64,000 bases of DNA from Magallana gigas (taxonomy: Eukaryota): contig NC_088855.1 in assembly GCF_963853765.1 (NCBI RefSeq), positions 40,300,001-40,364,000 on the forward strand. Reading direction: 5' to 3'. This document shows, in pieces, positions 18,398 through 64,000 of the stretch; positions within the stretch are counted from its first letter, which is position 1, and each line of letters begins with the position of its first letter. The notes under the pieces are model-generated. The model was not told the origin of the DNA and ran no database searches. It saw only the letters and a list, made by a program, of their open reading frames with translations. The translations under genes were made by a program, and so were the position numbers.

Positions 18398-19361
18398 TGG
18401 TCCCCTTTGTTGATGCATACATAGTGCATCTCGCTTTATCTACATATTGTAGTAAAAAGGAAGATAATCTACATGTATGTATATTAGTAATTAACACAAG
18501 AATGAACCCCAAGCATTAACCTACCATTAGACGATGAAATGAATTTGTTCTCTTTATCTAAACCTTTATACTTTGAGTCATTTCTCGTTCATTTAAATGG
18601 CATATATTTTTTCTCAACAAATAATATGGTCCCAGATTAACTTTATTTTTAATATCTAAGGTCATTAAGCGATATGAAAGCTCTAAAGTAGGTCAACTAA
18701 ATGGGGCGACGTTTGCTTATATTTTGTTTATTTGCATGGATACTTATCCCAAAAGAATGTACATTGTAAATGACCACTTACATATACGACACGTAAAGTT
18801 CGTGTTTAGTAATCCACTTCAGATTTTTAAAGGACGAATGGTTAAAAAAAAATAACCACCATCGTAGAAATCGTATTAACAGAATAAGTATTTTTGTGAA
18901 ATCTGTTTTCAAAAACTTTAAGATTTTTGTTAAATTAAAATACTTTTTGAAAGAAATCTTGAAACGCAATTTGAAGAAAAAACGTATAGCAAGGACATTT
19001 CATTTTAAACGAAGCTTCATATTTTTCTTCTACACGTGTATTCAACTAAAGATAAAAAAAAATTAACATTCATCAGTGTGTCGGCTCATAATCATCGAAC
19101 AAAGAGGACGAAACGTCATTATATTTTCAATCCGCTTACATTTATCCGCACAAATCGTGTTCCATTTTTAAGAAATTAAATCAATAAGAGTTTCAAACTT
19201 TTAAACGTGTTTTACCGTCGCATTATTTAAGGTTTTTACGGATCATTGAGCGCCCGAACATTACAGGACTACATAGGTAGTTCGACCGTTATTTGGAGGA
19301 GATAAAAGTATCTCCAAATGAAAACTTTTTTTTAGAAAAACAGTGACATCAGATTGAAAAA

Positions 19362-20817
19362 ATGTCTCTACGATTTTTGGTCGTAGTTTTGGCTATGTGT
19401 TACAGCGTGTATGGAAATCCTCAGGGTTGTTCTTACGATTCCACGGAACTCCTCCACACGTGTAATGCTCGAGCCTGGTCCTTACCGCTGGCCTTTGGAA
19501 CCTTCTCTCCTCAGCCACAAAGAATTCTACTACGTGAAGTGGATGGAGAACTCCCAAACGGCTCACCAAGCGGTCCAACCTTTTCTGGATTCTCCTCCAT
19601 CAACACGGGAACGTTTGATTCCAACTATGCCCCAGAACTGATCATTAGGTGTACCTCTAATGGCCAGTTAATCATCACCCAGGCCGCTTTCACTGACATG
19701 GGATGGGTAGAGGAGTTGACGATAGAAGACTGCGACATTCTCTCTCTTCCTGTTCAAGTCTTTCAAAATTTCGGAAACATTAACCGTTTTGCCATCATTG
19801 GCGGGTCCATTGATGCGATGGTAGGAGATAGCTTTACTGGGATGAATGTCGAAAAAATGACCACGGTGCCTGATCCTAGAGGGGAGTTTATTATCCGGAA
19901 CAGCCGACTTGTATCAGGAGGTTTTGCTTTTGGCGCCCTTTTCTCGCAGGCAAACGCAACCCGCGTCATCATCGAAAATGCCAATCTGAAATCCATCCAG
20001 ACCGATATGTTCTATGCCCTACAGAAGATGACCTATCTGTCTCTGAGTAACAATCCCTATACTTACCTACCCACAGATCTGTTCAAGGGAATCAACTCGT
20101 TGACCACGGTGGACTTATACGGCATTTCCTGGGCGTGCACTTGTACAAACATCTGGCCACCTACGTGGTTGGGAAGCAACAACATCACCATGAACGGAGA
20201 TGCTGTATGCGGCAGCCCAACAGCGTATGAAAGTAAGTTCAGGTTTTCTACTGAAAGCGTGAAATGGTTCAAAATGTTATTTATTCTTATATAAATATAT
20301 GTATAAAAACAACGCCATCTTTTCTTCAGATGTAAAAATGTCCTATTATGAAAAAGAACAGTGTCCTCAACAAGATGTTTGCGCAAAAGCCGGACAAACA
20401 GGTAATAAACTATACAAAATCATCTTCAAATTTTTTTATTTTCTAAATTCCTGATAAACATGCTCACAGCAAAAAGAATACAGACATCGGGGACGATAAA
20501 ACCCTCTTTGTCTATAGACCAATACTAGTAAGCATCAGATGTCCCTTTTACAGTAAATGACATTGTCCTCTGTCTATCATCCAGGTTTCGTCGTGGGAAG
20601 CGTGTGTGTGACCATTCTGGACGTGGTCAACTACGCCCTACTGTTCACTACCTTCGTCCTCTCCCTCGTGGCCCTTGGGCTGGTCATCCACACCAAGAGA
20701 CAAGTAGGTAGCGCCAAGGACTCCAAACAGAAAGGCAAACCCGCCGCCAAAGGTTCCGCGATCCGGCGCTCCAGTGCCAGCTGGAACAAAGTCACCGACG
20801 CCCAAAGCCAGGGCTAG
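19362..20817 (+). CDS. LRR single-pass membrane protein, paralog 5 (391 aa)
   Basis: Exons 19362-20232, 20330-20401 (72 nt), 20585-20817. Signal peptide; LRRs; LRRCT WACTCTNIWP; TM YALLFTTFVLSLVALGLVI; tail RRSSASWNKV. Confidence 0.9.
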
Positions 20818-25270: not shown

Positions 25271-25432
25271 NNNNNNNNNNNNNNNNNNNNNNNNNNNNNN
25301 NNNNNNNNNNNNNNNNNNNNNNNNNNNNNNNNNNNNNNNNNNNNNNNNNNNNNNNNNNNNNNNNNNNNNNNNNNNNNNNNNNNNNNNNNNNNNNNNNNNN
25401 NNNNNNNNNNNNNNNNNNNNNNNNNNNNNNNN
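25271..25432. other. Assembly gap (N)
   Basis: Run of n. Confidence 1.
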
Positions 25433-27864: not shown

Positions 27865-27994
27865 NNNNNNNNNNNNNNNNNNNNNNNNNNNNNNNNNNNN
27901 NNNNNNNNNNNNNNNNNNNNNNNNNNNNNNNNNNNNNNNNNNNNNNNNNNNNNNNNNNNNNNNNNNNNNNNNNNNNNNNNNNNNNNNNNNNNNN
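27865..27994. other. Assembly gap (N)
   Basis: Run of n. Confidence 1.
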
Positions 27995-49846: not shown

Positions 49847-49908
<62 letters not shown>

Positions 49909-60889: not shown

Positions 60890-61120
60890 TCAAATACATG
60901 ACCTGCTCTCACTGCAGTGTATTTTTCCTGATCCACAACAACATTCGTGCTCAGAGTCCACACAAAAGCACTCGTTTTCAAACCACATATGCCCATTCTC
61001 GTCCGTACATATCGCGGAACGCTTCTGAATGGAGTGACCTCTCCTGGTATTGTAGGCTTCTCCAATCACCGCCAAAACCAGTACAAGAAAAACTAATCGA
61101 ACACTCGTACCGCTATGCAT
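60890..61120 (-). CDS. Secreted 8-Cys peptide precursor B (76 aa)
   Basis: MHSGTSVRLVFLVLVLAVIGEA|YNTRRGHSIQKR|SAICTDENGHMWFENECFCVDSEHECCCGSGKIHCSESRSCI*. 83-nt 5'UTR intron 61138-61220 (GTAAGT...TTTGCAG). Confidence 0.88.
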   Translation of the reverse strand: MHSGTSVRLVFLVLVLAVIGEAYNTRRGHSIQKRSAICTDENGHMWFENECFCVDSEHECCCGSGKIHCSESRSCI

Positions 61121-61273
61121 GATTGTCAAAATAAAGTCTGCAAATAAGAGAATACCCAAACAATTTAGAAACAATTCATCGTTACGTGATTCACTAAAAT
61201 ATACAAACTTTACTACTTACTTGTTGAGTTGTGGTGTCCCAGGGTTTGATAATTCCCCTGGATGCTTGTCTCC

Positions 61274-61280
61274 ATTTATA
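61274..61280 (-). promoter_or_regulatory. TATA box of peptide gene B
   Basis: TATAAAT on -, about 55 nt upstream of the UTR-exon donor; conserved in copy C. Confidence 0.7.
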
Positions 61281-63369
61281 TCAAATGCCTGAAAAAGACG
61301 TCGCAGTTAACGTGGTTACGTAAAACTTGCCACAATCTGTTCCTTCCGGATGTCCATAAATATGTATGTGCTCCGGTAACACTTAAGACTATAGCATGCC
61401 GTTCAGGTATTTTGTGTGTACCGTATCACTTCTACGCAACAGGGTTTTTTTGTTATTACGTTGTAACCTTGACATAATGGCAAATTCTAGAATTTAATGT
61501 CCAACAATGTTTAAACACATACTAGTAATCAAACAAACTTGGGAAAAAAATCCCACATCAAAATTCTCCTTCCAGCATATGTACAAGTGTAGATATTTGT
61601 AATTCATTATCGAAAAACAAATGGTGACAGAAATTAGCAAGATTTGTTTTTATTCAACAATTTAAAATCAATCGTGGCGAATGACATTTTATTAACTTGA
61701 GATTTATGACAAATCTATGTCAGGTTTCAAAAACCATTTCTAACATTTACACTTTTTATGAACAGATACCCTAGCGACACTATAAAACATTCATGGCATT
61801 AAAAGCATAAGTTTTCGACATCTTATTTAATCAGAGATATCCATTTACGTGCTAATTCCACTTGACTACAGGGTACTGTTCTTAAGCCAGAGTATTTTCT
61901 TTAAATATTTTATGCATGTCCATATAAATATAATATAGAAAGCATACTCTAAAGAAAACATAAGCTGCATTTATAATTTATAAGCAAAGTATTGATGTTC
62001 TTTAACATATTGTTAACGCAATTATACATCTCTATTTTCAAAACTAATGAAGTGTATTTTCAAAAAAACAGAGAGACTATGGCAGTTGACTGTTCAATAA
62101 TTAATAAAAATGCTAATAGTCACTGAAATCTGCCATAAATTTGATTAAGTAACCACGTCTATACACCTGTTGCTCTCCCCCCGAAACCTACTCCGTCTGT
62201 CCCTGCCCTCATCCTGGCCTTCAACTCACTCCAGTACCTAGTTTTGTCGGTCAACAATGCTCAATTTAACGTGCAACAAGAAGCATCCATTTAACTACAA
62301 AAAAAAAAACCCAAAACAAATGAGGACAAGTAATTTCATAATATATAAATTGCTAGAAAATTCTTCTATGTAATTATTATGCTATTGATTTACAGTTATA
62401 TATATTTACAGAGGTTTATTATCTTTTCCATGACTTGACCGCTAAAGCAAAGACATCTTGACCAGATCATCGTAGCTAAAACAAGTGACTAAAGCTATAT
62501 ACGTTTACAGGACCGATACTTCTGAAAAATCTTGATAGTCTAACAGTATCTAACTTATTTGAAGAGTACTTGCAATATGATAGGAAACACATTGAAACTC
62601 AGGTGAGTGTTTGGTAGGCAACTTGAAAACCATTAAACGCATGGTCATAATTAAATTCCAAAATTATTTGAAAATATATCTTGTCATTTAAGGTAACATA
62701 TTATTACACAGTGGAAGAAAAACAAAATTCAACTTTTATTGTAAATTTTCAATCAATACATCAATGACCAATAAATGATATTAATTCATTCATGATTGAC
62801 AATTTTTGTGTACCTTTGTACACAAAGGTACCTTTTTTAAGGAAAAACAATTTTGAGACTTATTTCGTTGTTTTGGAAAAAATACACAGTAAAGAGATAT
62901 TTGACCAAAACAAGATGCTCTAATTGGCTGTAGGCATTAGTCTTATTTATCATTTTTATAAAGTTACATGCATAGTCATCACAGTTCTCAAAAAAAAAAA
63001 ATTCAGCGCATATTGTTTTAACGAAAAAGCTGGAACATTCTACTATAGAAATATGTAGAAAAAAGTGGAAAAATCTAAATAATACAAAGGGGGGGGGGAT
63101 GTAGGCAACTTTACTAACAATGAAGGGCATTCGGACTAGCATAATAGATCAAAATTACTACACTTGCTAGAAATTCATAAAGATGTGAGTAATAGTTTTG
63201 TCGACACTATGTATTTTAAAGTTTTAAGTCGACAGATAATCGTTGATTATTTCTAGGTCAATGATGTATTGTACAATGCTGACAGATATATTTCTTTGGA
63301 AACTTGTTTATTTGACTCAAAGGCTAGTTTCACTGTCTAGTCTAATTTGAATGTCTCAGTGGTGCCGTC

Positions 63370-63600
63370 TCAATCACATGACCTGCTCTCAATGCAGTGT
63401 ATTTCTCCTGATCCACAACAACACTTGTGCTCAAAGTCCACACAATAGCACTCGTTTTCAAACCACAGATACCCATTCTCGTCCGTACATACCGGGGAAC
63501 GCTTCTGAATGGAGTGACCTCTTCTGGTATTGTAGGCTTCACCAATCACCGCCAAAATCAGTACAAGAAAAACCAATCGAACACTCGTACCGCTATGCAT
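63370..63600 (-). CDS. Secreted 8-Cys peptide precursor C (76 aa)
   Basis: MHSGTSVRLVFLVLILAVIGEA|YNTRRGHSIQKR|SPVCTDENGYLWFENECYCVDFEHKCCCGSGEIHCIESRSCD*. 5'UTR intron 63618-63700. Confidence 0.88.
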   Translation of the reverse strand: MHSGTSVRLVFLVLILAVIGEAYNTRRGHSIQKRSPVCTDENGYLWFENECYCVDFEHKCCCGSGEIHCIESRSCD

Positions 63601-63753
63601 GATTGTCAAAATAAAGTCTGCAAATTAGAGAACACCCAAACAATTTAGAAACAACTCATCGTTACGTGATTCACAAAAATATACAAACTTTACTACTTAC
63701 TTGTTGAGTTGTGGTGTCCCAGGGTTTGATAATTCCCCTGGATGCTTGTCTCC

Positions 63754-63760
63754 ATTTATA
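63754..63760 (-). promoter_or_regulatory. TATA box of peptide gene C
   Basis: TATAAAT on -, same position as in gene B. Confidence 0.7.
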
Positions 63761-64000
63761 TCAAATGTCTGAAAGAGACGTCGCAGTTAACGTGGTTACG
63801 TAAAACTTGCCACAATCTGTTCCTTCCGGATGTCCATATATATGATTGTGCTCCGGTAACACTGAAGACTACAGCATGCCATTCAGGTATTTTGTGTGTA
63901 CCGTATCACTTCTACGCAACAGGCGGTTTTTGTTATTACGTTGTAACCTTGACATAATAGCAAATTCTAGAATTTAATGTCCAACAATGTTTAAACACAT

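Follow-up and report, generated by a model that had tools for sequence, protein, structure and literature searches.

Duplicated exon cassettes encode the Cragi-CCCGS peptides of the oyster Magallana gigas, with a possible episode of adaptive divergence in the derived copy

The closest described system to the locus reported here is that of the Cragi-CCCGS1/2 precursors of Magallana (Crassostrea) gigas, which were obtained from a visceral-ganglia transcriptome and put forward as regulatory peptide candidates without a known function (Realis-Doyelle et al. 2021, Mar Drugs 19:452, PMC8398477). In that report, expression was found to be very low in ganglia, and CCCGS2 expression was higher in the female gonad, digestive gland, mantle, D larvae and juveniles. 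The two peptides were described there as alternative transcripts of one gene, no relatives were found in other species, and an antimicrobial role was not excluded by the authors (PMC8398477). We analyzed a 64,000-nucleotide (nt) stretch of the M. gigas genome (NCBI RefSeq assembly GCF_963853765.1, contig NC_088855.1, positions 40,300,001 to 40,364,000 of the forward strand), hereafter the window, in whose numbering positions are given. It holds three copies of a small cysteine-rich peptide gene, named A, B and C in this study. As judged from its proteins, the gene is LOC105346269, published as Cragi-CCCGS; a protein-cluster look-up revealed no difference between the C protein and XP_034299235.1 (LOC105346269) in the part common to both, and the B protein is UniProt A0A8W8KDV4 and differs by one residue from K1QT16. 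The mature peptide of 42 residues with eight cysteines and the CCCGS motif is likewise that of the published gene. In contrast to the published account, the two peptides are encoded here by two duplicated exon cassettes 2.48 kb apart rather than by alternative transcripts, a third paralog (A) is present on the opposite strand, and relatives were found in M. angulata and two further oyster-like sources. On these sequences, the published claim that there are no relatives outside C. gigas no longer holds. The assignment of the isoforms to duplicated cassettes, the analysis of evolutionary rates, the third paralog and the orthologs in other oysters are new relative to that account, to which a possible half-VWC fold is also added.

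Conotoxin-type superfamilies combine a conserved signal/pro region with a hypervariable mature toxin. The oyster locus resembles them in its small prepropeptide, its putative dibasic cleavage site and a fixed cysteine framework around which other mature residues change; the contrast between a conserved prepro and a variable mature part is also seen, for B versus C only. It differs from them in that only three copies are present instead of a large multigene family, there is no pervasive excess of replacement over silent change, and orthologs reveal the reverse contrast between the mature and precursor parts. The cationic antimicrobial peptides of bivalves (defensins, big defensins, mytilins and myticins) are also similar in being small, cysteine-rich, lineage-restricted and encoded at duplicated loci, with secretion as a presumed further likeness, whereas the peptides described here are acidic, have a different cysteine framework and show no sequence match to them.

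Searches of the whole 564-Mb assembly with a protein query and a profile revealed three family members, all of which lie in the window. The coding sequences (CDS) of B (60890-61120) and C (63370-63600), each with 76 codons plus a stop, are on the minus strand and belong to a direct tandem duplication of 2.48-kb cassettes with a repeat spacing of 2480. In each cassette, an 83-nt intron separates a 69-nt exon from the coding exon. The first unit, which is the B cassette, covers 2480 bp (60802..63281, minus strand; self-BLAST and repeat search), and the window part of the second unit, the C cassette, covers 63282..64000 (minus strand; self-BLAST of the window and contig L004), with its end at approximately 65684, outside the window. 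By self-BLAST, 60802-62708 matched 63282-65179 at 93.7%, and 62778-63286 matched 65169-65684 at 94.8%.

Comparison of B and C codon by codon reproduced exactly the counts given in a preliminary description of this DNA, which had been made from its letters alone. Ten of the 42 mature codons (codons 35-76) differ by a total of 12 nt, all ten are replacements (B/C: A/P, I/V, H/Y, M/L, F/Y, S/F, E/K, K/E, S/I and I/D), and all eight cysteines are intact. The 34 codons of the signal peptide and propeptide (prepro, codons 1-34) contain four nucleotide differences, comprising three silent changes and V15I. By Nei-Gojobori counting, there were 11 non-synonymous (nd) and 1 synonymous (sd) differences in the mature part, where one GAA/AAG step is silent, and nd = 1 and sd = 3 in the prepro. 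The Fisher test suggested in the preliminary description, which compares these counts between the mature and prepro parts, gave p = 0.027. The ratio of non-synonymous to synonymous differences per site (pN/pS) in the mature part was 2.3 for B versus C, which alone was not significant (p = 0.69). The mature CDS was also the most diverged 126-nt segment of the duplicated unit; none of 2020 non-coding segments reached 12 differences, and its divergence was in excess of the 3.6% background (binomial p = 0.002). This background is the substitution divergence of non-coding DNA between the 2.48-kb units (78/2145), to which 136 gap columns are added.

We found that these differences are real. The Logan contigs L011, L012, L013, L018 and L019 carried all B-specific states, and the C states were present in L008, L014 and contigs of runs X5, X6 and X15; altogether, six B and three C haplotypes from independent public runs carry the B/C differences. 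An origin of the differences in assembly errors or in collapsed or mixed haplotypes has a negligible probability, as sequences of the B type and of the C type were recovered repeatedly from independent runs as well as from RefSeq/UniProt entries based on other assemblies. Two of the ten replacement sites, codons 56 (S/F) and 70 (S/I), are polymorphic within B. When the allele pair B_L012 and C_L008 was compared, pN/pS was 1.0 in the mature part and 0.64 in the prepro, and part of the contrast between these parts in the window is due to two private silent variants in its C allele. A contrast of N/S counts between two sequences overstated the case.

The changes were polarized with contigs L015-L017 from another oyster species as the outgroup. 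The B stem revealed seven fixed replacements in the mature part (P36A, V37I, Y44H, L45M, K59E, E66K and N76I) and no silent change, with no replacement and one silent change in the prepro. On the C stem, the mature part acquired two replacements (F52Y and N76D) and two silent substitutions, and the prepro acquired V15I. B is the derived copy, because the ancestral peptide is common to C, the M. angulata-type allele and the outgroup. In particular, K59E and E66K form a reciprocal charge swap on the B stem by which the net charge was kept, and the residue altered by K59E is shared without exception by the rest of the family. Gene conversion with A as the donor was considered as a source of these changes and rejected; only two of the seven B changes match the A residue, and the neighboring silent sites are not A-like.

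Likelihoods were computed with a GY94 program written for this analysis, whose estimates of omega, the dN/dS ratio, agreed with those of IQ-TREE (0.360 vs 0.360 and 0.535 vs 0.513, with matching kappa). Across the family, omega was 0.37 in the mature part and 0.36 in the prepro; in the B/C clade, the values of 0.59 and 0.46, respectively, were not different from each other and not above 1. A branch model of the mature part gave an omega of approximately 10 on the B stem and 0.30 in the background. When branch lengths were shared with the prepro, the B stem differed from the background with p = 0.0005 and from omega = 1 with p = 0.018. Replacements on the B stem per non-synonymous site (7/104) also exceeded the B-derived changes in non-coding DNA (6-9/488) approximately fourfold (Fisher p = 0.003-0.012). 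Between species, the mature peptide was more conserved than the prepro, which is the reverse of B versus C. In the comparison of C with its ortholog, we counted 3 N and 5 S in the mature part (pN/pS 0.13) and 7.5 N and 4.5 S in the prepro (0.53), and the comparison of A with its ortholog gave 2 N and 3 S in the mature part (pN/pS 0.17) and a prepro value of 0.28.

C has thus retained the ancestral peptide, and B is a young copy. After the duplication, B fixed seven mature replacements without silent change, with two more replacements still polymorphic, and the prepro, intron and small exon stayed unchanged or were kept alike by exchange between the copies. On the most likely reading, the burst on B would represent an episode of adaptive divergence (neofunctionalization) of the new copy over a purifying background rather than a continuing arms race; we assign this a probability of roughly 0.47, slightly below even odds. 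The evidence for such an episode in a young duplicate is modest, and the statistics are borderline. The preliminary description had proposed diversifying selection on the mature peptide; a lineage-specific burst of replacements on B stands, whereas pervasive selection of the arms-race type is not supported.

Several results weigh against an adaptive burst. The B branch was picked after the data had been seen, so that its p-values are optimistic, and correction for three stems gave p of approximately 0.05. In the mature part alone, the B stem differed from the background with p = 0.011 and from omega = 1 with p = 0.052. The other two checks named in the preliminary description gave null results: site models revealed no class with omega above 1 (M2a vs M1a, twice the log-likelihood difference (2dl) = 0.0 in the family and 0.10 in the B/C clade), and the McDonald-Kreitman test was not significant (mature part, p = 1.0; whole CDS, p = 0.22). 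With more sequences, dN/dS was thus not significantly above 1 in the site models and was so only narrowly in the post hoc test of the B branch. No RNA support for B was seen in the runs aligned to the locus, and an exact look-up of the 100-residue B proteins revealed no spliced B transcript. Seven replacements without a silent change also fit neutrality by themselves (P = 0.18-0.27). This last result favors the view that B is a redundant young duplicate under relaxed constraint that drifts at an omega of approximately 1, with the all-replacement pattern arising by chance; we consider this possible, though clearly less probable than adaptive divergence. The McDonald-Kreitman tables, the replacement polymorphisms within B at codons 56 and 70, the change by K59E of an otherwise invariant residue and the lack of a B transcript in the aligned runs all agree with it. 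Drift of this kind does not predict the fourfold excess of B-stem replacements over the non-coding rate or the likelihood-ratio test against omega = 1 (p = 0.018), and the open reading frame (ORF), all eight cysteines and the other conserved positions of B were found intact in six haplotypes from independent runs, with the net charge preserved by the K59E/E66K swap.

A further explanation concerns the flanks, which the preliminary description had called near-identical. This description holds only with a qualification: the substitution divergence is 3.6% across the units, and in the 88 nt directly 3' of the stop (60802-60889) it is 9.1% (8/88), close to the 9.5% of the mature CDS. With this 3' flank as the local neutral yardstick, the excess of B-stem replacements was gone (Fisher p = 0.18-0.55), which also counts against an adaptive burst. 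Such values would be expected if the duplication were older and exchange between the copies had homogenized the 5' half (prepro, intron, small exon and proximal upstream DNA) and not the mature part and 3' flank, so that the contrast would mark a conversion boundary and not selection on the peptide. No fixed B/C difference was found in 61095-61358 (264 nt), whereas the intron is approximately 7% diverged between species, and the B/C intron differences in the window are polymorphic within C; this absence of fixed differences suggests that the copies have exchanged sequence in the 5' half. As a full account, however, we regard a conversion mosaic as unlikely. Four of the eight 3'-flank differences fall within 7 nt (60812-60818), close to where the duplication junction and the likely poly(A) site lie, and the remaining 4/68 are not significantly above background. 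In addition, few silent sites of the mature part have diverged (1-2 of approximately 22), and the asymmetry of 7 N on B and 2 N on C is not explained by age alone. Conversion and selection can coexist as explanations. Relaxed constraint acting together with conversion of the 5' half is likewise a serious competitor of adaptive divergence. It appears improbable that, as in conotoxins, diversifying selection is still acting on a toxin-like or immune peptide to follow a rapidly changing target. Such selection would account for the Fisher result of B versus C (p = 0.027), for the five different residues found across the family at each of codons 56 and 76 and for the antimicrobial role left possible by the authors of PMC8398477. 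The M2a vs M1a comparison with its 2dl of approximately 0, a family-wide mature omega of 0.37 that equals that of the prepro, the stronger conservation of the mature part between species, the presence of only three copies and the negative charges of the B and C peptides are all at variance with it. The binding of a rapidly evolving target, which the preliminary description had deduced from B and C, is accordingly not upheld: the signal is confined to one lineage, the site models are null, the orthologs show the reversed contrast, the copies are only three, and the peptides are anionic.

Within a short time, the B cassette replaced one in six of its mature residues. If its burst was adaptive, as we favor, B and C would form a compact natural experiment for the partner of the peptide, with seven residues differing on a fixed disulfide scaffold. 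They would also be an example of peptide diversification by duplication of an exon cassette in a bivalve known for presence/absence variation.

The C cassette is transcribed and spliced from a distal exon, as evident from an 867-nt spliced RNA contig of run X15, which consists of 25 nt of a distal exon, the small internal exon and the C coding exon joined at 63617. The 25 nt have a single match in the genome, at 40380239-40380263 (window-equivalent position approximately 80239), beside a GT donor. The first exon therefore has the orientation of B and C and is not part of either duplicated unit; it lies upstream of both genes, approximately 16 kb from C and 19 kb from B. In the C cassette (minus strand), the 69-nt internal exon spliced to this first exon outside the window lies at 63701..63769 (RNA contig and genome match), the 83-nt intron at 63618..63700 is skipped in the RNA contig, and the 5' end of the coding exon is at 63601..63617, as set by the RNA joint. 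The corresponding features of B (minus strand) are the 69-nt internal exon at 61221..61289, the 83-nt GT..AG intron at 61138..61220, whose homolog is removed in the RNA contig, and the coding exon 5' end upstream of the proximal ATG at 61121..61137, whose acceptor is assigned by homology with the RNA-supported C joint. The RNA contig aligned to 61221-61292 with 0 mismatches, and the junction was refined to 61289 by using the exon-1 sequence; the frame of this exon is also kept in another species. Both cassettes retain the acceptor, the 83-nt GT-AG intron and an AATAAA signal 58 nt past the stop. By pattern scan, this signal lies at 60827..60832 in B, within the duplicated 88-nt 3' flank, and at 63307-63312 in C, in the same placement after the stop (both on the minus strand). 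The RNA contig also extends 520 nt past the C stop to 62850 (62850-63369); it crosses the AATAAA at 63307-63312 and enters the B unit at its upstream end, which is consistent with read-through towards the B cassette.

The RefSeq models use an in-frame ATG of the small exon as the start, 24 codons upstream; in B, this ATG is at 61275-61273 in an AAAATGG context. The proximal start is kept in paralog A and in a distant ortholog (P0026), which favors the start chosen in the preliminary description. The N/S counts are unaffected by the choice of start, because the extra upstream codons are identical in B and C. Between species, the 69-nt internal exon showed 1 change in 72 nt, the adjacent intron 6/83 and the 17 nt before the proximal ATG 5/17; this exon could encode a conserved extension of the N terminus or serve as a regulatory 5' leader. 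B and C presumably share one promoter. A more specific arrangement, which we regard as doubtful, is that B and C are mutually exclusive 3' cassettes of one distal promoter approximately 16-19 kb upstream, in which case duplication of the exon pair would have turned one gene into a source of two alternative secreted half-VWC-like peptides, and B may be restricted to M. gigas, variable in copy number and reshaped by positive selection after the split from an M. angulata-type haplotype.

The relatives in other oysters were found at several levels of divergence. One relative is the M. angulata protein XP_052717039.1, which the C-type contigs L008 and L014 match. Contigs L015-L017, whose source shows approximately 13-15% non-coding divergence, contain an A ortholog and an adjacent C-like gene, and contig L009 contains a more distant A-like gene with a syntenic flank. 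In L008 and L014, a C-type cassette adjoins the A-side flank, at the place of B in the window. These two short contigs suggest haplotypes without B, or with a different cassette order, and haplotypes or species may vary in the number or order of cassettes. The mature peptide of the L008/L014 cassette is identical to that of XP_052717039.1, and these contigs were compared with 60293-60801 and 63282-64289. We also observed that ten DNA runs of five other studies contain 0.70-0.71 of the sampled words at 59800-61209, compared with 0.81-0.82 in the best study. A very divergent haplotype could explain this low share, as could presence/absence; run X5 had no contig placed on the A-B segment, and the gaps over 59.8-61.2 kb in X5 and X6 carry no weight in this respect.

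Several candidate family members were rejected. One Logan contig (L010, SRR11244946; ORF P0027), aligned to 60226-62710, resembled a pseudogene of the B type with two stops, as if it came from a distant species. The contig is bisulfite-converted, with 360 of 361 aligned C read as T, and was left out of all tests, and P0027 stands in protein collections as a separate 50% cluster representative. The B cassette was apparently unmethylated in this sample, because CpG sites were converted too. Long profile-search matches (P0028-P0031) proved to be bacterial-type Reg_prop propeller and other repeat proteins that share a short D-x-x-G-x-x-W motif. In three Logan gene calls (P0001, P0007 and P0008; L008:690-1043, L012:355-768 and L014:191-598), the TGA stop is read as W, adding approximately 40 residues, which results from the genetic code of the gene caller and not from biology.

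The precursor of B, read from the proximal ATG, begins with 34 codons for a putative signal peptide and a short propeptide whose last residues are KR (61019..61120, minus strand), followed by the mature peptide of 42 residues (60893-61018) and the stop codon (60890-60892; together 60890..61018, minus strand). The corresponding parts of C are the 34-codon signal peptide and propeptide (63499..63600, minus strand; codon comparison) and the 42-residue mature peptide (63373-63498) with its stop codon (63370..63498, minus strand). A hydrophobic core and the KR site are visible in the precursor sequence, and the cleavage sites are putative. Each mature peptide has eight cysteines in the framework C-x12-C-x-C-x6-CCC-x6-C-x5-C, at mature positions 4, 17, 19, 26, 27, 28, 35 and 41, and the CCCGS motif occurs in each of A, B and C. 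All three are acidic, with net charges of -6 (B), -7 (C) and -3 (A); being strongly acidic, they are not typical antimicrobial peptides.

To the extent that the fold can be predicted, the mature peptide weakly resembles the N-terminal half of a VWC or fibronectin type I (FnI) module, which we take as a lead and not as membership. AlphaFold2, run on a seven-sequence alignment, gave five models, one of which was all-beta with a predicted local distance difference test (pLDDT) score of 82, while the other four scored 52-60. The best structural matches were consistently to the N-terminal VWC subdomain (CCN3, collagen IIA, peroxidasin, CRIM1 and thrombospondin) and to FnI modules, with a template modeling (TM) score by query of 0.7-0.8, a root mean square deviation of 1-2 Å over 35-40 residues, a Z-score of approximately 5 and weak Foldseek E values of 0.03-0.2. 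Upon superposition, the predicted all-beta fold overlaid VWC subdomain 1; however, some differences were present. The peptide has 8 cysteines and not 10, with CxC and CCC in place of CxxCxC and CCxxC, and is half as long. A Pfam search gave no family match for the peptide and no VWC (PF00093) match even at E<=10, a sequence search of the PDB gave no meaningful relative, and features from the ESM Atlas scored <=0.81 and pointed only to generic small cysteine-rich families.

In paralog A, the CDS of 74 codons plus a stop lies at 59928..60152 and the mature peptide of 42 residues at 60024-60149, both on the plus strand and identified from the ORF list, whole-genome search and alignment; the gene is tail-to-tail with B. 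Its mature part is highly conserved among alleles and in the ortholog of another species. Long (GA)n/(CT)n microsatellites were found at 57905-58000, 58689-58790, 49850-49912 and 1345-1380, and contig L008 also terminates in such a microsatellite. The window contains runs of N at 6538-6684, 25271-25432 and 27865-27994 (439 bases in total). We also found a weak tblastn match at 19347-19433 (plus strand) that is signal-peptide-like, with a hydrophobic core followed by a cysteine, and may be another small secreted-peptide exon.

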